DNA of 64,000 bases, taken from NCBI GenBank assembly GCA_965235115.1, contig OZ249453.1, positions 15,686,001 through 15,750,000 of the forward strand, written 5' to 3'. This stretch comes from Laetmonice hystrix. Taxonomy: Eukaryota. The translations under genes were made by a program, and so were the position numbers. The notes under the pieces were generated by a model. That model worked only from the letters and a program-made list of their open reading frames with translations, did no database searches and had not been told where the DNA came from. Positions 6,125 through 63,902 of the stretch are shown here, one piece after another (positions within the stretch are counted from its first letter, which is position 1; each line of letters starts with the position of its first letter).

Positions 6125-7670
6125 TACCATAGCGCATATAATTTAAGTCTAGTTAGCTGGAGAGAATCAAGTAACCATGCAGCGTTTCTGTTGAGTTATA
6201 ACAACTTGCCACAGGCAAAATATTTGAGCTAGGCTGACTCAATATTCCATTGGAGCGAGGTCATTTAAATGAAGAAGGTACTATAGAGCAAATTATTTTA
6301 AAAGCCTAGCTAACTGAACAGGATCAAGTCACATGCAGCGTTTCTGTTGAGGTCTCACAACTTGCACCAGACATTATATTTGGGCTAGGCTGACTCAATA
6401 TTCCATTGGAGCGAGGTAACCTAAATACAGAAGTTAATATAGCGCAAATAATTTAAGCCCAGATAACTGAACAAGATCAAGTCATCATGCAGCGTTTCTG
6501 TTGAGTTATGACAACTTGCACCAGGCAGGACATTTGAGCTAGACTGACTCAATATTCCATTGGAGCCAGGTAACTTAAATAAAGAAGTTAATATAGCGCA
6601 ACTAATTTTAGTCCAGTTATCTGGATAGGATCAAGTCACCAGGCAGCGTTCCTGTTGCGTTATAACACCTTCTCCTAAACAAAATATTTCAGCTAGGCTG
6701 ACTCAATATTCAGCTGAACCGAGGTAACTTAAATAAAGAAGTTACTATACCGCAAATGATTTAAGTCTAGTTAACTGAACAGGATCAAGTCACATGCAGC
6801 GTTTCTGCTGAGGTTCCACAACTTGCACCAGGCATTATATTTGGGCTAGGCTGACTCAATATTCCATTGGGGCGAGGTAACTTAAATAAAGAAGTTAATA
6901 TAGCGCAAATAATTTAAGAGCAGATAACTAAATATGATCAAGTCATCATGCAGCGTTTCTGTTGAGTTTTGACAACTTGCTCCAGGCAGGACATTTGAGG
7001 TAGGCTGACTCAATATTCTATTGGACCGAGGTAACTTAAATAAAGATGTTACCGTAACGCAAATATTTTAAGCCCAGATAACTGAATAGCGTCAAGTCAC
7101 CATGCAGCGTTTCTGTTGAGTTATAACAACCTGCCCTAAACAGAATATTTGAGCTAAGCTGAATCAATATTCCACTGGACCGGGGTAACTTAAATAAGGA
7201 TGTTACTATAGCGTAAATAATTTAAGCCTAGCTAACTGTATATGATCAAGTCAACATGCAGCGCTTCTGTTGACTTATAACAACATGCACCAGACAGATC
7301 ATTTGAGCTAGGCTGGCTCAATATTCAGCTGAACCAAGTTAACTTAAATAAAGATGTTACTATACCGCAAATGATTTAAGTCTAGTTAACTGAACAGGAT
7401 CAAGTCACTATGCAGCGTTTCTGCTGAGGTTCCACAACTTGCACCAGACATTATATTTGGGCTAGGCTGACTCAATATTCCACTGGACCGAGGTAACTTA
7501 AATAAAGATGTTACTATAGCGTAAATAACTTAAGCCCAGCTAACTGAATAAGATCAATTCACCATGCAGCGTTTCTGTTGAGTTATACCAACGTGCGCCA
7601 GGTAGGATATTTGAGCTAGGCTGACTCAATATTCTATTGGAGCGAGGTAACTTAAATAAATTAGTTGACT
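6125..7670. repeat. Right subterminal array of the EnSpm element, about 10 x 153-156 bp
   Basis: gcagcgtttctgttgag recurs at about 154-bp intervals (6189, 6345, 6499, 6653, 6806, 6960...); shares tgttgagtta and ggtaacttaaat motifs with the left array. Confidence 0.9.
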
Positions 7671-15055: not shown

Positions 15056-18000
15056 GTGACTACATTAAAAAGGGGTCAATTCCTGCCAGTGTGATTAGTG
15101 TTGATACGACTCATCGACCTATATAAGGAAAAAAACATTCTGTACGACTCCCCCTAGCGGCCAATTCACTGGGAGGGGTCACAGTGCTGCTGTCACACAC
15201 ATTCACACGATGTGACCGGCTGGTTTAATGCACGATTGACAATAAATTAACACAAACACGTCCACTCGGATCACACAAAGACTCCAACCTGGGTGGGTCC
15301 CGTCATATGGTTTCAGTTAGTTAGTTAGTCTACCAATTTCACGGCTCATAGAACTCGTGTCAATGTCGGGATAAGTAAACGAGTTGGCTGAAACAAAACC
15401 ATTTAGGTTTCCGTCCCAGCACCGAAGATCTGCTTACATATGCATTAGAACGGTAAATGTAGGACGCAGGTTGGTCCCCACTTCAGGATGATCTCATCTG
15501 GTGTTAATCTGCGTGGATTAACCCAATACGTACAATGATAATCTCGGAGATTATCCTAACAGTAATCTGCGCCATACTGGACCCCTTGAGACAGCTCGTC
15601 CTCCGCGTACTCTGTCACCTAAAACACAAAAACAAATTTCTCTTCTCGTGATTCATAACATTACATACCAGTCAATACCCCACACAAACACTGGAATATA
15701 CTCTGCTTGTGGTCTTTAATTGGTTTTCACCGCCCTGTTTTTGGTATGTTATGAGTTGAGTGCAAAGTGCATTAGACAAAGGTGGCTGTCGGGTGGGGTT
15801 AATTACAACTAGCCCCAGGCCCGTGACACGACTGTCAGAGGAACTTGATAGCAAAGTGTCGGTTAATCAGCGAGTCTATGAACCGACTCGCGTGTAAATC
15901 GCGTGTGTCTAGCGACGTGTCTGTTGGCTTGGGAAGCATGCCACATCAAAGAGTTAAAACCGGCGAGCAGCACTAATTATGTAAATTGTGATGGGCCAGG
16001 CAGTGAACGCTGGCCACTGGAAGGTGTCGTGATTGGTGGTATACCTGCTGTTGTCATGGAAACAGGACGGCCGTCTCGTAAAACAACACAACTGATGGGT
16101 ATGGTTTGGGGGGAGGGGAGGGGGAGGGGGGGGGGTGTTTTGACCATAAACAAGATTTAGTTATATGTGTCCCTCTTTGAAACAGTAACATTAAAGGAAC
16201 ATTGATTGCATTTGGCGTATTGGGTTTTAGGATGATAGGTATCTATACGTATTTCGCGCTAGAACGTCACATCTTGTTTCTGGATATCTCTCAATGGTAG
16301 ACTTTCCACTCAAGTCGTTTCGCCGTTTCAACTCAAATCCTCCTGGTAGATGTTCCTTGCGATCTGTAGGGGATTCAGGTTCTAAGGAGTTAAAAAGTTG
16401 TTTCTTTTTTTGGGTAAAACCCGGTGGTTTTGTAAAGTCGAATGCTAGCGGAAGCTACAGCAGTGAATTATTCAGTCTTAAAAGCGACTGGAAGTGCGGA
16501 AAAGTGATAAAATATCAATTAGGGTAATTGGCTATAAAAGCTGTTTTGTCAAGATCGCCATCTAAAATGAGCTGAAACTTTCCGTTATCAGGGAGTTAAT
16601 CAGGTTTCCATAGAAAGACCATATCTCCTGAGGTGGCGGTCGTAGAACTCGTACAATGCAGATGTATACTTACGGCTTGATTTTTTAAGCCAGTAGATTT
16701 CATTACAGACTTCTTTCTGGTTGGGTTAAGCAAACTGCCCCGAGGAGACTTAACAAAGAGATGTGCCTGACTTTGAGTAAACGAATCTTGTCTAATGTTC
16801 TACATGAATTCACATTACATTAGCAATCCCGCCCTGAGTGCTCTAAGTCGAGGGATAGATTTACCCCCTCGGGGGGTGACACCCCTTTACCCTGCCCCCT
16901 AGGGCTGGTGTATGTGACACCCTCGTTAGCCTTTGTTGGAGGATGGATGCTCGTGTTGCCTGGCTTGGGGTAGGGTAGTCTGGTTAACCCTAATGTAACC
17001 CTGTTACAGCCAACCCCAACAGTGTCAGGGTGGTCCTCGACCTAACACACACAAAAAATAACACCCCGTTTCCCCTACCGCCATCCCCATCACTGCACAC
17101 AGAAAGAGAAACCTCAATCGTAAACATCCGCGTAAAACGGCACATCAAAACTTCTCTTGTCACGTAAGCTTAGATCTTCACAGTCTACAAGTGTCAGCGG
17201 CAATTAGATCAAGCTTTTCTGAATCTCTCCTGACGGAGGGGAACCCCCTTAATGACGTCAATCTTTCGGAGAAAAGCACTGTGTCGTAAACCCAGAAGAA
17301 TTGTGTATGGAAGCGTAGAAAAAGATTGACAGTTCCAATATTGTTGTTATAGATACCAGGAATTTCCCCTCAATACAGGAAAGATAAAAGTTAGGAAAGC
17401 ATCTCTTCCTTTCCCTTTCCTTGTATACATTGTGGCTTCTTTCCTCTTGTTCCTATACTGGTCTTGTTTAGAGGAGTGCTGTGAAAGATTCACATGAAGT
17501 CATCCTTCCGCAATGTGTGACGATGAAGTCATCATTCCTCAATGTTTGTGATGACTTGAGTATACAATGCCCAGGTGTGCAGGTAACATATGCTGTTCTG
17601 CTGTAACCAGATGGTCGGGCGGCGGTTCTGACATGACAGAGGGGGTGACTGGGGTGTACCCCCTACCCCCGTCCCTCCTAGGGGGTGTGAGGCCCCTCGC
17701 CGCAACATGACATACTTCAACCTCCACCGTTGCCCCTGTGCCATGGTTCCAATGTCCTGAGTGTCAAAACTCATTCTTTCTCCTCAACCCATGGCCAGAC
17801 ATCTCTTCTGATGTACTCTGATTTGATTTTGTTTGACAGACGTAGGGCTGAGTTGACAAGGGGGTGGAGGGTACAGAGGAGCAGGGGTGGTACTCTGATG
17901 GGAAAGATGACACAGGGTTACAGAGACAAGGCGAGAGTCGGCCACAACAAAACGTTGCCATTGCCATCTCAGGTTCAGGTCGTCGTGGCGACTCAGGCAG

Positions 18001-34682: not shown

Positions 34683-35022
34683 GCGAGGAGCCTCAGTTTT
34701 CCTGCGACCGCTGCTCTGAGGTGTTCCGATCTAAGGTGGCCCTGCGTCGTCATGAGACGTACGTTTGTAATAACCAGAATGCCATCTTTAGTACAATCAA
34801 CCGTGGCTTCAGGGAGACCATCCACCATCAGCACCTGCACCTGCATCAGCACCAGCACCATCAGCAGCAGCAGCTGCAGCAGCAGTTCAGTGATGAAGAG
34901 GATGTTGAGGACCACCAATCCCATCACCCATCTCACCCGGACCGGGCGGAGAGACCACACACCTTTGAAGGTCATCTCAACCCGGGGATCAAGGACCCAG
35001 ACAACGAGAACTCCAATGATAG
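34683..35022 (+). CDS. PRDM16/MECOM: PRDM3/16 coding exon: zinc finger 1 (C2HC type) plus His/Gln-rich linker; phase 1 in / phase 2 out
   Basis: Acceptor ttttttttgtatcacttcag ending 34682; C+GC completes Arg, then EEPQFSCDRCSEVFRSKVALRRHETYVCNNQNAIFSTINRGF. This matches EVI1 ZF1 ([28 protein letters not shown]...AFS, recalled), including the terminal Cys. Probable donor AG|gtcagt at 35022/35023; the 3' end is less certain than the 5' end. Confidence 0.9.
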
Positions 35023-35649
35023 GTCAGTGACTTCAAACTTTGAACTAAAAACATCCTCCTTGTGTGGATGTTTGCGTGGCTGCTTACACAGATTGATGAT
35101 CTCCTAATATTGTGGTTGCATCTATACATTATTCTGATGTTACCTCAGGAAAGCACGTCAGGTATATAAATACAGACATACCTGCAAGTATCCCTATATG
35201 AAAGCACTGTCCCATGATACCTGCAGTTCATATTCTATAGCTAGATCCCCTCATTAGGCGATCTCTTACTTGGTGTTGATGTGCATGCCAGAGGGTAATC
35301 AGTCATCACATAGATATGATACCTGTGAAATATTCATTCACCTCGCCCACCATGCACGGCGATGGCTCCACTCATTGTCTCTTCACCAGCATCCAATTTA
35401 TGAAATCGTTCTCAGCATGTCTTGTTTTTTTGTTCTCAGATCACAATAACGCGAACCAGTATTTTAAATATATCTCAGAGTTATATCTGAAGAGTACCAC
35501 GGTCAGTGCCCATATAACAATGGCACTAGATTATAATTCTCATGTAATCTGTAGGCTAAGCTCACACAAACAAACCTTGGCAGGTGGGACGGGAAGAGAC
35601 CAATAATATAGACTTCTCTAACTATATGTAGCGAGTGTTTGAAGATATG

Positions 35650-36022: not shown

Positions 36023-39000
36023 ACCCGGTTAGGATGAGCCGTCTGTTCCTGCTGCGGTTGAAGTGTCGGTTACGGAGACAGACTTCCCTCGCGTGTTTAA
36101 CAAATGACTCGCGTGGCGTTCAGAAACCACTAATGATGCCAGCTGGGCTTGCCAAGTGATGAGCAGCCATGTATCTATCTGTTGCGGGCAGCAAGGGTTT
36201 GCAGTCGGAGGGGGAGGGGGGACACCAACTGATCATTGCCTCGTTAAGTGTCAATTAACTTAATTGGCATCACTTGAGTCTTGGGCATTCATATTTTATG
36301 TGACGTTGCGGGCAAGGGGAGGCTGTGTGATGAAAGGGGGGAGGGGTGGGAAAATGGACGAATGATGTGTGCGCGTGGATTTGGTGCGGGATTATAGCGC
36401 GATGACGTGTTGCGGTGTAATCGTAGCGTTCTATGCCGTCACCCGTACCGCAGAAAACGTAAATATGGTGCGCTTTTCTGACCAACGCCGCTCGTCATAA
36501 TCTTAATTACTTTTTACTTTATTAGATCCCAGGTCGTCTGATCGTACAAAGGGCGACGAATGGGGCGAAATTGCAGGGATGCGAGCCCGGGCAAAAGTGC
36601 TTATGCCGCCATAGCATGACTTGCAAATTAGGATAGCACTGCAACATGAAGAGCAAATCCAAATATTGGTCACCCTTTAGTGCGGGACTGTCATATTTTA
36701 ATTAGCAATGTGCACAGATAGTATGGATGGGGACCGATGGAGCAAATGGTCTGATGTTGTGATGAGGGCTATCTTTGTTTATGGTTATGGCCCAATGACG
36801 TGACCTGACAAGTATCGGTAACGTTAGGATAGAACGATTGTGGATGGCAAGGCTTCGTTTGATCATAATCAGAGCAAGAACAAAGAACGTTGGATTGGAG
36901 CTCACAGTACGACGGTCTGTGATGGCTGTAATAGCGCAGACGTAACGGTATTATTGTATATAGGCATAAATCGTGCGCATGGGAATTATTCAAGTCGGGA
37001 TAAAATAAAATAAAAATAAAATAAATCAGATGCTACCCATACCCAGATATGTGCTGTGTGTCACGTTTTATGCTGTATTTTTAACATAACATTTAATATC
37101 AGATGTTTTTTATTGGGGAACTGAAGAAATGGTGGCCAGTTGAGTTCTCAGCAACTGGTTGAAGGTGTCCGTTTTTTAAAAGGCAGTGCCTGGGGAGTGG
37201 GTTGTCAGAAAATGTCTGAGAAACGTAATTGTTTCTGACATGCCAGGGTCGATCATACTGGGGTGTCTTCGGAGAACCATCCACTTCCGGTCTGTGCACC
37301 CGGATCCAGCCAAGAGTAACTGTTAATACTGAGTTAGAAATGAAATCCCACAAAAAGGGGTATAGGAACCCTCCGTGGGTGGTTGCATGGTAATGTTTGG
37401 ATGGACTAGAGAAATGTCGTCGAAACTATGGTTGTGTCTTGAGCATTAGATCAACTTGCCTTCATAAATATATGCCAAGACAGGGCGGCTCCAGGATTTT
37501 AGATCGGAGATTCCGACAGAAAATATTTGTAAAAAACGGCCGAGCTCGTCCAATTTAGGGAACCATATCAGAACAAAGAAAAATCGTACCAAAAAGATCC
37601 CCGGGATCCACCCGTACAAGTGATGGCTGTACATGGTAGAACGAAGTGTCTGAACAGCTGTTAGTTACATACCAAGACAGAACTGGTTGAGTTGATTGTA
37701 AGGGATGACACGTGGATTCCATGTCGTGCACACTCAGCCCCCAATGGTTTATTTCTTTAATATTACAATGATCTGTCAGTGTCACCCTCTCGCAGTCAGA
37801 CCGGGAGTGCCTGTTTCTTATATTTCACCAGAACGAGGTAGACTTTCAAGAGAACTGATCTTTCCCCCATCAACGTAAAGAAGAGCTAGGGGCCGCGGGA
37901 GGGGGTGGGGGTGGGGTGGTACCAGGCCGCGACAGTGCCGCTGTAACAACCCCACCGTCACAATCCCCCTGGACACGTGACCATCACGGGGAACTCAGAC
38001 ACAGGATGGTGTAGATGACAAGACAACGAGGCTCTTCATTCAGTCTCACTCGGCAGGGGGTCTACAAAAACCCTTACACCCTTCTCCTTATCCACCCCTT
38101 TTGTACTATATCACCCCGGATAAAAACGATACAAAGTGAGGCCGTATATCATCAGCAAGGTCATCACGTTGAAGTCATAAGGACCAACGGAGAAAATTTA
38201 TGTAGACCCTAGACTGTGCCTAGGCAAGTGGTTTTATGATATCGGCAGTTTTTGCGATATATTGTTATGTACATCGTTGTATATCGGTACATCCTTAGAG
38301 TTATCGCAAGTTAAGGGGACTATCAGCCCTTCCCAAGATGGGATAATCCAGTTTCCATGGTAACAGAGGGTGGGGAAGTGTCAGTTGGTGACAGTGTAGG
38401 GTGGAGGAGGTGTCGGACCGACTGACAGTGAGTTCGTGACACGGAACATCTGAGCGTTGTCCCGGGGCCATCGGTACACGGCCGGCGGGAGGCGGGCGGC
38501 CGGTCGCAACACGAGACGGGGCGGTGGTCGAGCGGCCCGGACCCCGGCCCTCCCCGGCCCCCGGCGGCCCTCGGCCCCCGCCCCGGCCCCCGCGCTCGCC
38601 AGCCGTGGGGGGTGGGATGGTACGGATTCCGCCCAGACCGTGTCAAGATGACATTCTCCGGGTCGTCTCCACCAGCCGTGTGGGCTGCGATAACGGCACA
38701 TTCCGTACACGCGTCATTGTGGCTTCTGCCATACTTCCCACCTCCTCTCTCTCTCTCTCTCTCGCCATCTCTCCCCCTCTGTCAAGGAAAATGCCACATA
38801 AAAAGGCGAGTCAGTTGTAACGTTAGAGATGGCAGTATGGGCCTCAGCATCCTGAGCCGTCTAAGGACACGAGTTGTTTTGTAAACAACGACCGTCCCTT
38901 GTATTATTGTATGTCTGCCTCCATCCCGCCTCACTATACCAGCAACAGGTCGTCATGGAAACACTCAACCGAAGGGAGTCAGGGTGGAGATTTAAGGGCT

Positions 39001-39566: not shown

Positions 39567-40228
39567 AGGACCGCTGCTGGTAGGGTCAAGGTCTAAGACT
39601 GCCGAGACAGGACCACTGCTGGCAGGGGCAAGGTCTAAGACTGCCGAGACAGGACCACTGCTGGCAGGGGCAAGGTCTAAGACTGCCGAGACAGGGCCAC
39701 TGCTGGCAGGGGCAAGGTTTAGGACTGCAGGAAGGCGGGGTCAAGACCTAAGACTGCTGGGACAGGGCCAGTGCTGGAAGGGTCAAGGTCTAAGACTGCT
39801 GGGACAGGGCCACTGCTGGCAGGGTCAAGGTCTAAGACTGCTGAGACAGGGCCACTGCTGACAGGGTCAAGGTCTAAGACTGCTGAGACAGGGCCACTGC
39901 TGACAGGGTCAAGGTCTAAGATTGCTGGGACAGGGCCACTGCTGGCAGGGTCAAGGTGCTGGGACAGGGCCACTGCTGACAGGGTCAAGGTCTAAGATTG
40001 CTGGGACAGGACCACTGCTGGCAGGGTCAAGACCTAAGACTGCTGGGACAGGACCAATGCTGGCAGGGTCAAGGTCTAAGATTGCTGGGACAGGGCCACT
40101 GCTGGAAGGGCCAAGACCTAAGACTGCTGGGACAGGGCCAGTGCTGGCAGGGTCAAGACCTAAGACTGCTGGAACAGGGCCACTGCTGGCAGGGTCAATG
40201 CCATGCTGAGTGAACTGCTGGCAGGGCC
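39567..40228. repeat. 41-42-bp minisatellite gggtcaaggtctaagactgctgggacagggccactgctggca, about 16 copies
   Basis: Directly visible; ends about 10 bp before the piggyBac MITE. Confidence 0.96.
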
Positions 40229-40242
40229 GAGTTGGCTGTTAA

Positions 40243-41014
40243 CACGTTGACTGCCATGCCCAGATTGGGACGAATCTTCCCATTTGCCAAACCAGGGTCA
40301 CGTGTGATTTATAATTATAAATTACTAAACTATTTATCTATTGGACACTGAACACTCGTTTTCTATTTTGAAGGTAGAAAAGCACTACAGAAGTATACTC
40401 GTAGTTGGCACCACAAGAGAGTCTGTTCTTTGGATATGCCAGCTACGAGTCATAGTGTGGCAGAACTTTTCTTACAAGAGAATTAATTACCTAGACCATG
40501 AACTTATACTTACCTTAGAAAAGATGTTTGAAACCATTAGAATAAGCCTGCCGTTGTTGTAGGCCGAACATGCTTAGGCCTACTATTGCTTTTGAACGTG
40601 TTAAAATTTTTAATGTTTTATTGGCAAAAGCGAAGTGAGAAGAACTCTAAAATCATATGGTTATGATTTGAAAAGTTCTGTTGTAAAACTTATTAATGTT
40701 TTACAAATTTTATGTTTTCAGCATCGAAAATAGTAAAGTGAGAAGGAACCCTAAAATTGTCATAGGGTGACATATATTGTCATATTGTCATATGTGAAAA
40801 GTTCTGAATTAAAATTTATTAAAATATAAAAGTATGCAAATCTTTATGAGTGGGCTCTATAGTGTTGCCACTGAAAACCTAAAAGGAGTTTCATCAGTTG
40901 CCAGTGTACTTAAGGGGAGACTGAAATCAGTTGGTTTCACTACGACTATACTCGTAGTGGCAATACACAGTACACTTAGTACAACGAGTATACTCGTAGT
41001 CGGCAGTCAACGTG
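40243..41014. mobile_element. piggyBac-type MITE, 772 bp
   Basis: Perfect 13-bp TIRs CACGTTGACTGCC / GGCAGTCAACGTG, TTAA on both sides (40239-40242, 41015-41018), subterminal palindromic gagtatactcgtag motifs, AT-rich interior with an internal duplication. Confidence 0.9.
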
Positions 41015-41598
41015 TTAAATGATACTGCACTATGACCACTGATCACAGGAGGTCCATGGGTGGTGAATGTGCACGGATCAGTCTTTGAGAAGGTTTGGAA
41101 TCAGTTGACAGCTAAAGTTTCAATCACTGTCCAACAACTTTGTGTTCAGGTGGGATGCTGCTCTGGGAGGTTGAGATGGGGATGTAGATACCCTCCAAGG
41201 AAGGATGAGAGCCCCCCCCCCCCCCCACTCCTCCTCCCCAATCCCTCCAACAGACGCCGGGGGTTAGATGTGGTCTGTGATCCCATTGGTCCGACTGAAT
41301 TGACACAGTGCCTGGGACCACGTGGAGGGGCCGGCTGCTGGCTCACAGCCGTCAGGGCCCGGACCATGACAAAGGCTCGAGAGACAATGCTGAAGGTCCA
41401 CGCCGAATGGTAGCAACCCAAAGGTAGGTCGGATCCAAAGTGCTGTGACCGATTTAGAAACTTGTAGCAAAGTTAGACGAGTTTGGCGGCAGGTTTGGCT
41501 GAGTAAGGGAGCAGTGACAGTAGTGTAGCTTGGTTAGTTCAGTGTATAATAACGTCCCTAGGTTGCATTGAGTGACGTTTCTCAGACATGACGAGCTT

Positions 41599-42060
41599 GT
41601 TGCTATGGTAATAGAGTTAGGGAAACATTGGTAATGGCAAGTAGTGCCACGTGGCTGATGTAATGTTATAAGGTCGGCGGTGCCTGACCGTTCCCCTGCC
41701 CGGCGCTGACTGACGGCCGGCCGGGGTAAGGCTGGACGGACGTCCATTCACAGGGCCGGGGGACAGGACCAGACGGGGAGGGGGTACAGCGGCAGGGTTA
41801 CCACCGGGGCTCGGGGCAATCGTCAGCCGGTAAAAGTGAATAGAGTCGGCGGAGAGTGGCGTGGGGCTCCACGTGGGTGAGTGCGGTCTGGATGGTAGGA
41901 GCGAACGGAGCGGAGTGATAGTGGCGCCCCCTGGACCGGCGCGGAGGAGTCGCTGCTGCTGCTGCTGCTGCTGCTGCTTGATACTCCAGCCACTGCGAGG
42001 CGAACGGAGCCGCACAGGGGAGCACAGCCAAATAGCGTCAGGTGTTCCGACCCACCCACC
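41599..42060 (+). promoter_or_regulatory. GC/CpG-rich candidate internal promoter and 5' UTR
   Basis: Abrupt GC/CpG enrichment, X-box-like GTTGCTATGGTAAT (41599), CTCF-like GGTCCAGGGGGCGCC on minus (41923-41937), (GCT)n tract typical of 5' UTRs, Inr-like TCAGT at 42074 just downstream. Confidence 0.4.
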
Positions 42061-42137
42061 TCACCACAACCACTCAGTGCCATCGGACAGGGTGCTTTGA
42101 TACCAGAGGGGTGACCATCCGACACAGTGGACGCATC

Positions 42138-42196
42138 ATGTCAATACAAGCCTCCAATCTATACCATGACACTGACTGCGGGCTGGTCCAGTCAAG
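42138..42196 (+). CDS. Candidate alternative first coding exon (MSIQASNLYHDTDCGLVQS) for a PR-less isoform
   Basis: ATG with A at -3, upstream in-frame stop at 42033, donor AAG|gtaacc in phase 2 (same phase and same AG as the exon ending at 35022). Lies downstream of a GC/CpG-rich island. No homology support. Confidence 0.4.
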
Positions 42197-44948
42197 GTAA
42201 CCGTCATGCTGAACACTAACCACCAACTTCATCGCCAACACTACCCGATCCTCATCTTACGGAGGTGATGATCTCACACATGTAATCTCTCAGGGGATTG
42301 GTCAGTCGATTCTTCCGAAACACACCCAACAGAAAACAAGAAATCGGTGGACTCTACCTATAGAAAGATTCCAACCTCTTGTTTTGTTGCGCTGAAAAGA
42401 TTCCGATGATTTAGTGATTGGGTGTGTATACGTACGCTACAGAAGGAAGGTTCACGGGTAGCAACAGTACAAATGGAATCTCATGTCGCCTGACATCAAC
42501 ATCGTCGTCGGACGTGGGGGAAATCCCATTCTTCACCCAGCCTCCTCCTCCTGTCGTGCTGGTGCTACCCCGCCAAGTTGAACACCGACAATTCACTGAA
42601 GCAGACGACCTATAGACTAGCACGGGTCCTGACGTGAGCCCACCCCAGACTGGCTAGGATTTGTCTCCCCTCAATATCTGCTCCGGTATTTTAATTTCTC
42701 GTGGGAAGTTGAGGATCTACTGCTGTTGTTATATTACTGTGGTCAGCAGAGAATGCAGGCCACAGACTGACCAGCTGTGAATGAAGACCAAGGTAAGAAA
42801 CGTTTTCTTCGCGCTGACGTTTGGTTACGATATTTCAGTGGTCAGTCAAACACCGTCGGTCAGCCGCTAGTGGCGAGCTAGACCGTTCCGACCGGCCTTG
42901 TAATAAATAGCCTGGCGTCGGAAACTCTTATTGTCCGCACATTATCATATCAAACGGCAGGTGTTGAAATCCAGGCTCGGTATTTACAGTATTGGCGGGG
43001 TGGCGGGGGGGGGGGGGGTAATATATTTGTATCGATAGTTTATTTCTCCTAGCAGCGAGATCCACGGAAATTTGATCGAACGAATTGGTTTGACTCATTG
43101 ATTGACTTCCAAACTCGCCAATCTACGGTAGTTCAATGCTGTATCTTCTGGAGTTTGTTTGTTTACATAAATATTTAACACTTAGTGGAAGTACCGGTTG
43201 ATTTATCAAGAACAGCTGATAATAGAGGATGCTGAAAGGGATGTTTTCTCTTTACAAAAATGTACAACGTCAAAACTGTCAGCTATAGGAACCGTGACTG
43301 TCAGCATTAGGTTCTGTGACTGAATCAAGTCATTGTGACTGATGCGTCCAAGAATTGTGACTGATGCGTCAAGAATTGTGACCGGTGTGTCAAGACTCGT
43401 GCCGGAGCGCTTGGTCTGTGAGTGTGGGAAGTTTGAATCAGATCAGCATTCCGTTATCCCAACGTCTAGGGTCCGGGAAAAATAAAACACCCCTCATTAT
43501 AACCCCTTTCTGAGGGTTTTCGCAGTAGGCGAGCAGTTCCCTTGGAAGTGGTGGACCGCCCAAGTCGTGAGGACCCTCAGCGGTGGAGGGGGGAGGGGGG
43601 GGGGGGGCATGGGGCGCAGAGCCCCAACGTGAGGACACGGTTTGACATCACTCGGCATAAAAAAAAAGTTTCCTTTTTTTGTGGCCAGTTCCCGTAAGCA
43701 CCATCGAAATTCCCATGAGCTTGTCAGCAATTTGAATAATTACCACTAATGAATTATTGTCATTCGTCACAATGTGGACCGACATGTTAATTAGTTTGAT
43801 GTAAATGCCAATAAGGAGGGCTGTGGTCTCACCACATGAGATCACACCAGGCGCCATTTGACAGCAGGCACAGCAAATAATTGTGTTATTTTTTTAAGGA
43901 CATTGAACGTAAGGATTCGGTTAATTCAATGTAAATGTTTACATTTACTGTGATAACGGGGCCGAGGTTGGGTATCGTTTTACTCGGCTAACAACTCGAC
44001 TAACAGTTCCGTTTGTTGTGTGGTTACTGAGACCGGGGTTTGATTTAGTACCAAGGACTGGTACAAGCAGGTTTGGGTTGTTGCATGCAGTCATGGGTAT
44101 TAGTATTTATAGCTGTTCACTTACAGTGCTTTATGTAGGAGGCTTTGTGAAAGGAGGGCGGGGACTGGGGTAGTGTGTGACCGCTGGGGTAGTGTGTGAC
44201 CACTGGGGTTAGGAGTGTGACCGCCGAGGTTTGTGTGTAACATTGATTGTGTTAGGATCTACAATTGGTAGTGGTGATGGTGGTGGGGGGCAGGACTCTT
44301 GACTTCTGCAACCCCCCCCCCCTTCCTTGCCTACCCCCCCCCCCTCCACCCCTATACATGTGTCCCTCGTTACCGGCCCCGCTGATGTCGCTCAGACGAC
44401 CCGGCCAGCAGACTGACAGGGAGCAGCCAAAGTTTGAAACGATTTGGTGAAGACTGCGTCAACAATGACAGCAAATGAAAACAAGGTCGAGCTGGTCGTC
44501 AAACTCTTTGCTCGATTAACGGGAGTGACATTATGGATAAATACAAAATGTTGACCGGAAACGGGACTTTGATTTATTTTTCAATTGATTCCCTCCTCCT
44601 CGCGGCAGGTGTTGCTGGTAATGCCGTATTGTTTCCTTTTAATACAGAAAATGTGCTGAAAACTAAAATCAAAACAGTTGCGCATGTGGACTACTAAAGT
44701 GAAAAAAAGAAGAAAGTAAGCTCTAGCTATTTATGGAATGAAGATGACATGCTGGTTCGTGCTCTGATATTGAAAGAACAAACTCATGATATATCTATAC
44801 AAAGTTTGATAGGTTTGATACAGGATATGTCATCGATCTAATATCCCATGTTGAGTTGTAATAGTATTCGTACAACTGTATACACACAGAAACAGACAGG
44901 GAGGGCTGAGATTGTATATCATGAGAGATCATCTTATTAATTATACTG

Positions 44949-46835: not shown

Positions 46836-48874
46836 AAGTGACCAGTGGGCTCGAGGGGTCAAGGCCAGGCTGCTGACCCCTGACCCTCAATGTCCTGTAG
46901 AGAACCGGTTCAGTCATAGCGACAATTTCCTCATTCATTCTAATAATTCCTCATACAAAGCAGAAACGAAAACAAACAAAAAAACAAACAAAAAACTATG
47001 GTGGATGGAAAGAAAATCCTGAATTTTATACTGGCCTAAATGATGTTCAGTATAATCTTGTTTGCCCATGATTGACAAAAATATATAAATTATATGTCAA
47101 TATTGTCAACCTTAAATAATAAGGTTAGGGTTCAGTGGGAATAATTTGGGCTAATACACCGAAATCGCGACCATAGGTCTGCATGGCCAGCTTGTTTGTG
47201 GCTCCATGTGTATATGTAGACTATATGTGTAGGCCTACAGATAGTTGTAGGCCTACACATTCTATACTGTATTGGTCTATACACATGTAGAGTGGGTGGT
47301 TTAGCATCCAGTCGGGGCCAGTAGACGGACAGTAGAGACACCTGGTGGCGGTGTTTGGCAGGCAGGTGGCCGGTGACTGCCCACCGTGCACACAGCGGTA
47401 CGCAGGGTTAGATTGTGGTGTTGTGTTGTCCGAGTATTATGTAACTAACCTGTCGCGATGATTTACGGAAACTATACTCTCAGCTGGGATCGGATCTCCA
47501 GGATGCTGACGATTATTCCAGTAGACGGGCGTCGATTGAGAGTCACCGAATCCCAGCTGGTGGTGTCGGAAGTCGGCGGGGACCGTCGCTGCGAGAGCGG
47601 GAGGCCGGGGTTGGGTGGGGACCGGGGGCGCCGTGCCCCGCCCCGACGGCCGGGCCGGGCGGGGACGGCCGGGCGGGGACGGCCGGGCCGGGCGGGGACG
47701 GCAGGGCCGGGCGTGGGCGCGCCCTCCGTCCGTCGGCCGGTCCATGCTCACGGCCCGGGCAGGGGCAGGGATAGACAGCTCCGATTGCTGCTGCCCTCCT
47801 GGCATTGTTCCAGTAAGAAACGAGATCGGTTCACAATATCGCACCCAGTCAAGCCACACCTACAGGGGCGCCTCGCCGCCAGACCGTATGTTGGCATGCC
47901 GCTGAGAGCGATATATTCTATAGTTCCTGGTCGTTGTATCATTCATGAGGGAGTGAGGGAGATTCCAACTCTCTCCTAAAACAACTCGTCCGTATACACA
48001 CCACCCCCGACACCGTCATAGAAGGATGACTCAGGATCGTCGACCAGATTTAGCTCTGTGTACAAATCATCCTGATTGAGGACCTTTACAGATATACGTG
48101 TTTCACCCCCTCCCCCTCCCACTTTACGTGTGAAATTATTGTGAGGTATTGTCGAGGCCTGGCAGGAGGGTTGAGATGACAATACATGGGGTTGAATCAT
48201 GCAGGCTTTAAAGAAACGCATACGCCTATAAAAAAAAGTAGAGGGTAAATTAAAATTACAAATTGTGACCACATGGATTTCATTCCGAAGAACAACCTTT
48301 GGCGAAGTTTGGTGGTGCAGCTTTTAGAGTCGGAGGGGGGGGGGGGCAGGGGTGTCCGGGGGTAGAGAGGGGGGTGTCCAGTGAAGGTGGTGGCCGTATG
48401 CAACCATAAAATCAGTGTAGGGATAAAGCAAGTGACACTTCTCCTAATTGCCTCCCGTCATTTGACGAACTTTCCCACGTGGCGGAGAGATCAGTCGTCC
48501 GTCTGACATGCATGGATGTGACGGACAGGCAGACAGTCGGCCGTACGGCCGGGTGAATGGACGGACGGATGAGAAGGGAGGGTAGTCCCGAGACAGGATT
48601 CGTAAGAAAGAGAAACGCTACACCTCACACGGCCTGCCCATTTCCACATGTTATTTGCATTCACGTTATGTGTGCGTGATTGCTTGGAGACTTCCTATAT
48701 CTGTGTAGGTGTCAGTGTTGGGGTGGTGTTGGGGTGGTAGGACAGTCGGTGTGGTGTGGTGTGGGACTTTCATGGGAACTGTTTATAAAAGAGGAAGATG
48801 AGAAAGCGGCAGATGTTGGTGGAATCATTCCACTTATTTCCCCCCGTACGGGGTACTGTGTCCGGGGTGGGGGG

Positions 48875-49019
48875 TTCGGTGTGCAGGCGTGGCCTGCAAC
48901 AGGATGTATGTTTGGTGTGCAGGCGTGGCCTGCAACAGGATGTATGTTTGGTGTGCAGGCGCGGCCTGCAACAGGATGTATGTTCGGTGTGCAGGCGTGG
49001 CCTGCAACAGGATGTATGT
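48875..49019. repeat. 36-bp repeat ggtgtgcaggcgtggcctgcaacaggatgtatgttt x4
   Basis: Directly visible; internal hairpin tgcagg/cctgca. Confidence 0.95.
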
Positions 49020-49087
49020 CCATATTGTTACCGTCAAGTTATTTACCAACCGATCTGCACGGGTTCTTCTCAACAGAGGATGCCGCT

Positions 49088-49450
49088 GCCCCACAGTCCG
49101 GCCAGCCCCACAGACCGGCCAGCCCCACAGTCCGGCCAGCCCCACAGACCGGCCAGCCCCACAGACCGGCCAGCCCCACAGACCGGCCAGCCCCACAGTC
49201 CGGGCAGCCCCACAGACCGGCCAGCCCCACAGTCCGGCCAGCCCCACAGACCGTGCAGAGCTCGACCAGCCCCACAGACCCCGCACCCACAGACCGGCCA
49301 GCCCCACAGACCCCGCACCCACAGACCGGCCAGCCCCACAGTCCGGGCAGCCCCACAGACCGGCCAGCCCCACAGTCCGGCCAGCCCCACAGACCGTGCA
49401 GAGCTCGACCAGCCCCACAGACCGTGAACTCACAGACCGGCCAGCCCCAC
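49088..49450. repeat. 17-bp minisatellite ccccacagaccggccag with interspersed variants, about 21 units
   Basis: Directly visible. Confidence 0.95.
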
Positions 49451-49829
49451 ATACCCCGCACCCACAGCCCGACCCTTCCCCAGATCCTACACCCACAGTC
49501 CAGCCGGCCCCCGGCCCTGCCCTCCCTCGCCATGTCAACCCTCCCTACCACGTCCCACAATCCCCACCAACCAGGTTCTCCTATTCCCACCCTCCCGGCC
49601 TACAATTTCTCCTCTATACCCCCATTATACCCCCCACTTGTCAAATCATTTTAAAACTACCCAGTACCTCATCATCTGTCCCATGTCACCCCACCCTAAC
49701 CCTGACATAAAGTACCAGCGAAACAAGAGAAAGCGGCCGCCAACAAGAACTTAGAAGGTGTCCTGCTTTTTTCCCCTCCTGCCCATCTCTGCACTTGATG
49801 GAGAGAGTGGGTCGTCACAGCTGTACTTG

Positions 49830-62439: not shown

Positions 62440-63902
62440 GTGAATGACTCAGTGAGAGGGTAACTTGGGGTCAAATTACATTGGTCAGTTCAAGTCGTCC
62501 AACCGCAAGGGTGCGGCATGTCTTGACATCGCAACAACAGAAAGCAGTTGGAGTTTACAAAAAGAAAAGTGCGCTCTGGTAGTCCCAGGGTATTAATTTT
62601 ATGTTCAGCTAGTACTGCTCGCCCGGTCTCGATTTTGTCTCAATGCGTGCAGTACGCATTGTATATTTCAAAAGTTGTTTCCCAATAACAGTGCATGAGA
62701 GCTGCAATAATTGCCGCTTCCAGTCAATAAGATTTAGGTTAAATACGTCTTGGCCACGTATCCCCGACCATACCACACTGTTGTATACCTGTGATCCGGC
62801 CTGGCATTTTATGACCGTTTAATTACATGAACGGAATCTTTGCGGGATGAGCAGTCTACAGGTTGGCTATCTATAGTGACCGTCTTGTCACGCCCTGACA
62901 GTTTACGTTCTGGTAGTTTGGAAGTGGAATGTTGAAGTAACCGATGATTTCTTTCCGCTTACAGTGGCCAAAGTGCGGAGATGCTCCATCTAGCCGGTGG
63001 TGAGGACGTAACGCTAGGATCCACGGAGGAGCAACCTTACAGTATCATAGACGCAGTAAGTATAGATTCCCACAGATCGGGGTTAGTGAGAGACTAGGGG
63101 TTAGCTAAAGAGACTGATAAACATTCGGGACTACATTGGGGACTATACTACATGGGGGACTATAGGTCTGGTGTCGATCAATTCTTACGTCACATCAGAT
63201 CTGATGTGGAATTTTCGCTGTATTTTTCTTTAATTGATTTGTAAGCTGTTAGGAATTATGAAAGTCATAAGAAGTTTAGCAAGCAGTGAATGCTAACTGA
63301 ACCCCTTTCACAGAGCAAGACAAATATGGCGAATACGAATTTTAGACAGACAGCTTTGAAAAAAAATGACCATTCATTTTTTCTTTTTATTGACCTTTAT
63401 ATTAACCATTCATTCTAAATTTAAATTTGTCAAAGGACATAAAAACATAATGTAAATAGACTGTTGCATGGATGACATAATTTCGCGCTGAGTATCGGTA
63501 ATTTGACTCCGTAAACTGGCTAACTCAGACGATACGCTACAGTTATTGGTGTCTGGTCCGTCGCCGGTTTTGTTTGGTGGGCAGCTGACAGAGATCCTAT
63601 CAACTTCACTCACCTTTGTACTGATGACAGAGACATTAATAAATATAGACCGAAATAAATAATTAAACAGAATCATTGTCTGTCTCCCCGTACTGGGAGG
63701 ACACCAACTGTAACAACTACAGAACGAAATCATTTTTTTCCGCGAACAAACAGACCCTTCTCATGCATAATTTGTCTCCTATTTGGGAAAGTGTCATTTA
63801 GGAAACTCATGCCTACACATCATTACTTTCTCTTACATGCAGCTGTTATTTTGATGCGTTAGTTATTCACTTTCCAAATTCACCTGGTTTTATTTAAAGC
63901 AG

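Follow-up and report, generated by a model that had tools for sequence, protein, structure and literature searches.

PR-minus forms are known for the vertebrate genes PRDM3/MECOM, PRDM16, PRDM1 and PRDM2 (PMC4009873). Within the PRDM3/16 family, MECOM (MDS1-EVI1 versus EVI1) and PRDM16 (full-length versus MEL1S) each give a PR-minus product with a shared zinc-finger body, and in PRDM2 (RIZ1/RIZ2) an internal promoter within the gene yields the PR-minus form (PMC4009873). Drosophila hamlet, a protostome orthologue, has the PR-containing long isoforms B, D and G together with PR-less shorter ones, which differ in their genetic requirement (PMC12227202). Short PR-less forms are established in both vertebrates and flies. 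The presence or absence of the PR domain changes how PRDM3/16 proteins act, and the balance between the two kinds of product is important for the biology of vertebrate blood, fat and cancer as well as for fly development.

A product of this type was proposed in a sequence-only reading of the annelid locus considered here, which took a GC-rich patch in the intron after the ZF1 exon for an internal promoter followed by a first coding exon. The proposed product would lack the PR domain and share the zinc-finger body, as in MECOM and PRDM16; it would stand beside a PR-containing product, as in hamlet, and arise from a promoter inside the gene, as in PRDM2. EVI1 retains ZF1, as seen in EVI1-type database sequences, whereas the candidate product would lose ZF1 and begin just before the linker and ZF4; its start, predicted here from sequence alone, would lie at another gene position than those of EVI1 and MEL1S. 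Annotation and western blots back the fly isoforms, whereas the annelid-type candidate is a prediction, and PRDM2 belongs to a different PRDM subfamily with an experimentally mapped promoter, whereas the promoter here is hypothetical. If the proposal were true, it would suggest that the PR-plus/PR-minus pairing is either ancient in bilaterians or re-invented at different gene positions. Should a spiralian, too, produce a PR-less form from an internal start of its own, the two-product design would be general to the family, and this locus would offer a simple test of it.

The window, that is, the whole 64,000-nucleotide stretch of DNA that was analysed, holds a gene that is identified by its domains and protein matches as an annelid-type PRDM3/16 (MECOM/PRDM16/hamlet) gene. 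An exon near 8.7 kb encodes a PR (SET-related) domain (Pfam PF21549 PRDM2_PR, E 2.2e-9), which matches the PR domains of Lingula, Lineus and Haliotis at 64-67% in tblastn. Both finger arrays were found, the N-terminal one including the FPCENC...DPSNLQRHIRSQH finger and the C-terminal one made up of three fingers, and the CtBP motif PLDLS sits in the last exon. The top named protein matches are PRDM16, MECOM and hamlet (Capitella at 56%, and Platynereis PRDM3/16). The protein of the closest relative (P0001) has 82% identity. For neither the last exon nor the ZF4/5 exon did protein-database searches give a protein at or near 100% identity, and the species appears to be absent from the collection.

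The exon model downstream of ZF1 could be corrected, and the coordinates are collected in Table 1. The ZF1 exon has 62-70% identity to ZF1 of Capitella, Owenia and Lineus. The true next exon is a newly located 91-base linker exon. Its homologue in a related annelid (contig L026, positions 7067-7153; 41% identity, E 4e-4) has the same acceptor phase and stands 2.2 kb upstream of the ZF4/5 exon of that species. In Owenia and Capitella, the phase-2 donor of the ZF1 exon is likewise followed by a small exon with phases equal to those of the linker exon, unlike it in sequence. This agreement, together with the linker exon itself, upholds the donor at 35022, whose phase the sequence-only reading had correctly given as 2 and as equal to that of the candidate exon. 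A rival phase-0 GT at 35027 (TCA/GTGACT, exon end 35026) would join in frame to the ZF4/5 exon, which begins at 64622 in the extended window (L003:622) with a phase-0 acceptor and an in-frame TGA 9 bases upstream. This rival donor scores -2.4 against 3.0 for that at 35022; because of this low score, and because it skips a conserved exon, it is unlikely to give the main form. The phase argument had appeared to fail on the phase-0 acceptor of ZF4/5, which has the same phase in another annelid (transcript contig L023), but this objection was overturned by the small exon of Owenia and Capitella and by the exon at 62965-63055. Neither a motif scan nor tblastn with mollusc and annelid proteins found a ZF2 or ZF3 exon in the 27.9-kb intron. 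The Owenia, Lineus and Tubulanus proteins are likewise without ZF2/ZF3 fingers.

Table 1. Features of the ZF1 exon, the following intron and the linker exon, in window positions (a slash marks an exon boundary)
Feature	Position	Strand	Remarks
ZF1 exon, atypical CCHC finger FSCDRCSEVFRSKVALRRHETYVC and His/Gln/acid-rich linker	34683-35022	+	Donor TAG/GTCAGT, phase 2
Intron enclosing the candidate start, 27.9 kb	35023-62964	+	Owenia and Capitella counterparts about 1.1-1.3 kb
E-box CCACGTGG, first of three	41318-41325		Motif count
X-box-like GTTGCTATGGTAAT, one mismatch to RFX consensus GTHNYYATRRNAAC	41599-41612		Chance-level motif count
GC-rich single-copy patch	41600-42000		GC 0.60-0.68, CpG o/e 0.72-0.92
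E-box CCACGTGG inside 12-mer CCACGTGGCTGA	41647-41658		13-mer ATAAGGTCGGCGG next, at 41668
E-box CCACGTGG inside 12-mer CCACGTGGGTGA	41869-41880		13-mer ATAGAGTCGGCGG before it, at 41840
Upstream ATG, 8-codon ORF	41892-41918	+	In 5' leader if transcription starts before 41892
CTCF-like GGTCCAGGGGGCGCC	41923-41937	-	By eye 12/15 core positions
(GCT)9 microsatellite	41952-41978	+	Sequence
In-frame TAG, 35 codons upstream of ATG 42138	42033-42035	+	Sequence
Candidate coding start, ATG + 19 codons + 2 bases (MSIQASNLYHDTDCGLVQS), phase 2	42138-42196	+	Read from sequence
Candidate donor GTAACC (AAG/GTAACC)	42197-42202	+	Score 3.3; real donors of the host gene 2.3-3.0
Linker exon, 91 bases, 1 + 30 codons: GQSAEMLHLAGGEDVTLGSTEEQPYSIIDA	62965-63055	+	Acceptor ttctttccgcttacag/T, donor GCA/GTAAGT

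The elements of the candidate start exon were all found as the sequence-only reading had described them, namely the ATG (42138-42140) with A at -3 (42135), the upstream in-frame TAG, the 19 codons ending in AAG/GTAACC, the (GCT)n tract and the distance of 6.6 kb from the ZF1 donor. That reading had expected the exon to splice onto a zinc-finger exon beyond 64000, and here it was mistaken, the actual next exon being the linker inside the window. Joined straight to the ZF4/5 exon, the candidate exon runs into an immediate stop (AG/G TGA), so that the expected in-frame join holds for the linker exon and fails for the target that had been named. The phase of the downstream acceptor, on which the proposal had been staked beforehand, fits the frame, since the acceptor at 62965 takes one base. 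The linker exon is the only in-frame target. Joined through it to the ZF4/5 and last exons, the frame stays open for 758 codons with no stop; PR and ZF1 are absent, and ZF4-7, PLDLS and the three C-terminal fingers are retained. As an internal cassette exon the candidate was rejected, because the segment from the TAG at 42033 to the ATG contains no acceptor that combines the right phase with a pyrimidine tract.

CACGTG E-boxes are targets of bHLH-ZIP factors such as Myc/Max and USF, and their symmetric extended form, CCACGTGG, is the one that Myc/Max prefers. Five copies of CCACGTGG occur in the window against 0.97 expected, a count reached in 1 of 100 shuffles, and three of the six copies in 264 kb lie within the 560 bases from 41318 to 41876, where 0.02 are expected from the local base composition; the E-boxes were spotted by eye ahead of the statistic, and these counts are post hoc. 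Two short motifs, each of them repeated, adjoin the E-boxes. The cluster is non-random, so the patch is probably regulatory DNA. In having three CCACGTGG sites in a GC-rich setting it resembles known clusters of CACGTG E-boxes, with the difference that its putative binding factor cannot be named by sequence alone. The stretch occurs once in the 627-Mb genome, and none of the variants of one re-sequenced individual falls within the E-boxes or the X-box.

These features suggest that the patch at 41.3-42.2 kb is most likely, though the assignment is tentative, an intronic cis-regulatory module of the PRDM3/16 gene. The three E-boxes and the two repeated motifs in GC-rich single-copy DNA would be bound by proteins of the bHLH-ZIP type, and the patch may act on transcription of this gene as an enhancer-type element. 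The ATG, 19 codons and GT at 42138-42196 would then be a chance by-product. The 27.9-kb intron has 3 ATG-to-phase-2-donor set-ups of comparable quality on its + strand, and its - strand, the control for chance set-ups, has 8, so the coding-looking part needs no special explanation. The intron is long compared with that in Capitella and Owenia, so regulatory DNA could have been added to this developmental transcription-factor gene. Against the enhancer assignment, E-boxes of the CCACGTGG type and GC-rich patches are typical of promoters as well, and the frame match to the next exon favours a promoter over chance roughly tenfold.

Somewhat unlikely, but the next to be weighed, is that the patch has no function at all and consists of intronic DNA, rich in GC and in part of low complexity, where motifs, ATG and GT came together by chance. 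Its composition is compatible with this. The sequence-only reading had called the patch a GC/CpG island; the GC content is indeed raised by about 2-3 sd over the window mean of 0.47 (sd 0.07), but the CpG observed/expected ratio is not clearly above the background mean of 0.74 (sd 0.27). No fewer than five other, richer places in the window, near 21.8, 38.3, 45.0, 47.5 and 60.9 kb, pass stricter thresholds that the patch does not reach, namely GC of >=0.58 together with o/e of >=0.9, both taken over 400 nt. Two further motifs that had been read in the patch did not hold up. The window has 16 X-box sites with up to one mismatch to GTHNYYATRRNAAC, such as that at 41599, where 12 are expected, which is not above chance; perfect X-boxes lie at 16050, 17343, 38351 and 38949. 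The CTCF-like site was not recovered by a search with the 14-base core pattern CCNSYAGRKGGCRS at up to one mismatch. A low variant density in 41804-42222, where the variants form one cluster, was considered as a mark of function and dropped, the plain intron at 40494-41018 equalling it with 3 variants in 525 bases. ATG-donor set-ups are common in the intron, as the strand counts show. What a functionless patch accounts for poorly is the E-box cluster, since three 8-base palindromes at this density are hard to obtain by chance even when the post hoc choice is allowed for.

An internal promoter for a PR-less isoform is an unlikely explanation that nevertheless has several features in its favour. 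Transcription would start in the patch, the first exon would end at 42196 and be spliced to 62965, and translation from ATG 42138 would give a protein of 758 residues without PR and ZF1. The frame that stays open across the join to the linker exon, the donor score that equals or exceeds those of the real donors, the A at -3 and the upstream in-frame stop are all consistent with this, as are the E-box cluster and the GC-rich single-copy patch directly upstream. The candidate is one of only three such set-ups on the + strand of the intron, and PR-minus or PR-less forms have precedents in the family (PMC4009873; PMC12227202). On the other hand, a phase match arises in one of three cases by chance, the - strand gives its eight comparable set-ups, and the CpG content is not clearly above background. 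The ATG at 41892 would intervene if transcription starts early. The sequencing runs that contain the stretch are of DNA, and their contigs pass unspliced over the donor at 42196 and tile exon and intron alike.

The comparison with relatives may also count against the short isoform. No match to the 19-residue peptide turned up in Capitella, in Owenia or in contig L026 of the related annelid, a comparison in which the L026 sequence ahead of the linker exon spans just 7 kb, while Capitella and Owenia, with introns of 1.1-1.3 kb, are too distant for their non-coding DNA to be aligned. The homologous introns of these two are short and AT-rich and contain no island; in blastn and tblastx of L026 against the intron, covering 7 kb of the L026 intron, only the exons align. 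An 'MLQ' start of one relative's protein (P0005), considered as a conserved start of the short isoform, proved to be an artefact, a bacterial gene caller having begun at a TTG as it read the tail of a retained intron. The fuller proposal, in which a protein lacking both PR and ZF1 would be made from an E-box-rich internal promoter in a lineage-expanded intron, with a start position unlike that of vertebrate EVI1 or MEL1S, is less likely still and decidedly doubtful.

It is very improbable that the patch is the promoter of a non-coding or antisense RNA, or of a non-coding PRDM3/16 leader exon with another donor, such that ATG 42138 is no protein start: in its favour, the GC content and E-box cluster would serve such a transcript equally, the - strand ORFs of 97-132 codons that cross the patch have no Pfam match in a search of ten ORFs in and around it, none of which matched, and no Rfam family was found in the window; against it, there is no conserved ORF or RNA family to which such a transcript could be attached.

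Returning to the preferred cis-regulatory module, the analysis supplies a compact E-box cluster marking a likely regulatory element. It also yields a corrected gene model, with the linker exon and the 27.9-kb intron, and a concrete predicted junction from 42196 to 62965. Small-share matches of sequencing runs to the stretch are presumably due to (GCT)n words.

The 5' two-thirds of a PRDM3/16 (MECOM / PRDM16 / hamlet) gene lie on the + strand of the window, and the analysis covered the window together with 200 kb of downstream DNA (264 kb for motif counts). The top protein matches come from the PRDM16/MECOM proteins of annelids and other spiralians, with two relatives at 82% and 63% and Capitella at 56%, which makes this an annelid-like animal.

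Exons and introns of the PRDM3/16 gene; L003 is the DNA directly downstream of the window, L003:622 being 64622 in window-extended coordinates
Feature	Position	Strand	Details
PR-domain exon	near 8.7 kb	+	Pfam PF21549, E 2.2e-9
Second PR exon	near 19.0-19.1 kb	+	
ZF1 exon	34683-35022	+	
Intron after ZF1 exon	35023-62964	+	27.9 kb
Linker exon	62965-63055	+	91 bases, acceptor ttctttccgcttacag|T, donor GCA|GTAAGT
ZF4/5 exon	L003:622-797	+	starts 622 bases beyond the window end
Last exon, long	L003:2535-4482	+	ZF6/7, PLDLS motif, three C-terminal fingers

The sequence-only reading had proposed a first exon for a PR-less isoform inside the intron after the ZF1 exon, spliced from a donor at 42196 onto a zinc-finger exon beyond 64000. 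The acceptor of the ZF4/5 exon is in phase 0, with AGs in phase 0 only and an in-frame TGA 9 bases upstream, and the same phase was found in L023, a transcript contig of another annelid. Joined directly to this exon, either the ZF1 donor at 35022 or the candidate donor gives AG|G TGA, a stop. The conclusion that the phase argument thereby fails was dropped after the Owenia and Capitella loci showed an intervening small exon. In both loci a ZF1 exon with a phase-2 donor is followed by a small exon of 1+3n bases and a phase-0 intron before ZF4. Guided by this exon order, the intron was scanned for an exon with those phases, which identified the linker exon, with a textbook acceptor and donor. 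Its 30 codons match L026:7067-7153, on a contig of a related annelid, with 41% identity (E 4e-4); the match shares the acceptor phase, and the ZF4/5 exon of the related species follows 2.2 kb downstream of it. The exon that follows ZF1 is this linker, inside the window and devoid of a zinc finger. The linker exon and the phases in the relatives also uphold the phase-2 ZF1 donor at 35022 and set the limits of the intron, which measures 1.1-1.3 kb in Capitella and Owenia versus 27.9 kb here.

Two overlapping GT donors, 4 bases apart, are present at 35023-35028, TAG|GTCAGT (phase 2) and TCA|GTGACT (phase 0). The latter, with a poor donor consensus, joins straight to the ZF4/5 exon in frame, skipping the linker exon. 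L023:1-114 belongs to an RNA-like contig in which splicing has joined the ZF4/5 and last exons and whose 5' end includes more than 100 bases of the upstream intron, reflecting either intron retention or a start within that intron.

The candidate exon itself reads as described earlier, with ATG 42138 (A at -3), an upstream in-frame stop (TAG at 42033), 19 codons plus two bases, and AAG|GTAACC after 42196; the (GCT)n tract is (GCT)9 at 41952-41978. Spliced to 62965, it opens 758 codons (MSIQASNLYHDTDCGLVQS-S-GQSAEML...), so that the downstream acceptor does have the phase 2 on which the proposal depended, and the predicted product would lack PR and ZF1 and retain all else. The donor scores 3.3, like the gene's real donors (2.3-3.0). 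A count of ATGs in the intron that have a purine at -3 and run through 10 or more open codons to a phase-2 GT scoring 3 or higher as a donor gives three set-ups on the + strand (the candidate and two sharing donor 55195) and eight on the - strand control. The chance of such a set-up beside a given 400-base patch is ~0.05-0.1, making its position adjoining the GC-rich patch (41600-42000) suggestive but not compelling.

The stretch 41560-42330 is single in the 627 Mb genome. The GC/CpG-island label is weaker than claimed: GC is 0.60-0.68 across 41600-42000 versus 0.47 +/- 0.07 in the window, but CpG o/e (0.72-0.92) does not exceed the background of 0.74 +/- 0.27, and stricter GC/CpG thresholds, not reached by the patch, are passed at five or more further sites in the window. 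The reported X-box has one mismatch, and such sites occur at chance frequency (16 in the window versus 12 expected), while the CTCF-like site was not recovered at up to one mismatch to a CTCF core pattern. The 8-base palindrome CCACGTGG, an E-box, occurs at 41318, 41647 and 41869, in a wider patch (~41.3-42.2 kb) where 0.02 copies are expected from local base composition. It is found five times in the window versus 0.97 expected (five being reached by 1/100 shuffles) and six times in 264 kb; two of the three sites lie within a repeated 12-mer, adjoined by a repeated 13-mer, ATARRGTCGGCGG. The palindrome was noticed before testing and its statistics are post hoc; even allowing generously for this choice, the cluster is unlikely to be due to chance. 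It points to a putative cis-regulatory module for bHLH-ZIP-type factors.

Tentatively, we favor the patch as an enhancer-type module of this kind, with the ATG and donor beside it by chance. That the patch has no function is somewhat less likely, the cluster speaking against it. An internal promoter making the short isoform, suggested by the open frame, is unlikely. A promoter of some other transcript, for which the same GC-rich composition could be invoked, is improbable. A search of Capitella, Owenia and L026, the last reaching only 7 kb upstream of its linker exon, gave no match to the 19-residue peptide. In Capitella and Owenia the homologous intron is short, rich in AT and free of E-box clusters, and between L026 and the intron studied here the alignment is limited to exons.

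The run search found the stretch in three sequencing runs (one sample) and in no RNA run; the three are genomic DNA, as indicated by even ~50x tiling of 40300-44900, introns included, and one unbroken contig across the donor (41532-42444). Searches of the protein collection gave no sequence from this species, and the absence of a low-level transcription-factor gene from RNA contigs is not evidence of absence. In a re-sequenced individual, 41804-42222 has one variant cluster (42085-42100) and each flank 6-7 variants; the plainly intronic 40494-41018 is equally low, so this low variation is taken to mean nothing.

PRDM1, PRDM2, PRDM3/MECOM and PRDM16 are all known to give products with and without the PR domain, two promoters being documented for the first two genes (PMC4009873). 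In Drosophila, hamlet gives rise to long PR-containing and shorter PR-less isoforms that differ in genetic requirement (PMC12227202). An annelid form lacking PR, if real, would be of a known kind, differing in the loss of ZF1 and in a start site elsewhere in the gene. The short-isoform proposal is viable, though unproven and not new in kind, and is now sharply testable at the predicted junction of 42196 to 62965.

Perfect RFX X-box matches (GTHNYYATRRNAAC) lie in the gene's introns at 16050-16063, 17343-17356, 38351-38364 and 38949-38962, amounting to six strand-matches versus 0.7 expected (six reached by 1/100 shuffles). An island at 38.2-38.9 kb, rich in both GC and CpG, is flanked by two of these matches, and RFX may provide input to the gene. 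Several repeats were also observed. A minisatellite of 36-base units, open in several frames (VPLVGVGHREVT repeated), occupies 17-1348 at the window start. The intron after the ZF1 exon contains a 42-base tandem array of ~15 copies (39567-40198) and a proline-rich repeat block (48700-49700, GC 0.64) with several frames open on both strands. Downstream of the gene, at ~15.82-15.90 Mb of the contig (L015-L021, 134-212 kb in window-extended coordinates), lies a very large array of an ~846-base repeat in both orientations, caught in a zinc-finger motif scan via a recurrent CTVCLYTTVASSIGTPHVSCFH-like translation.
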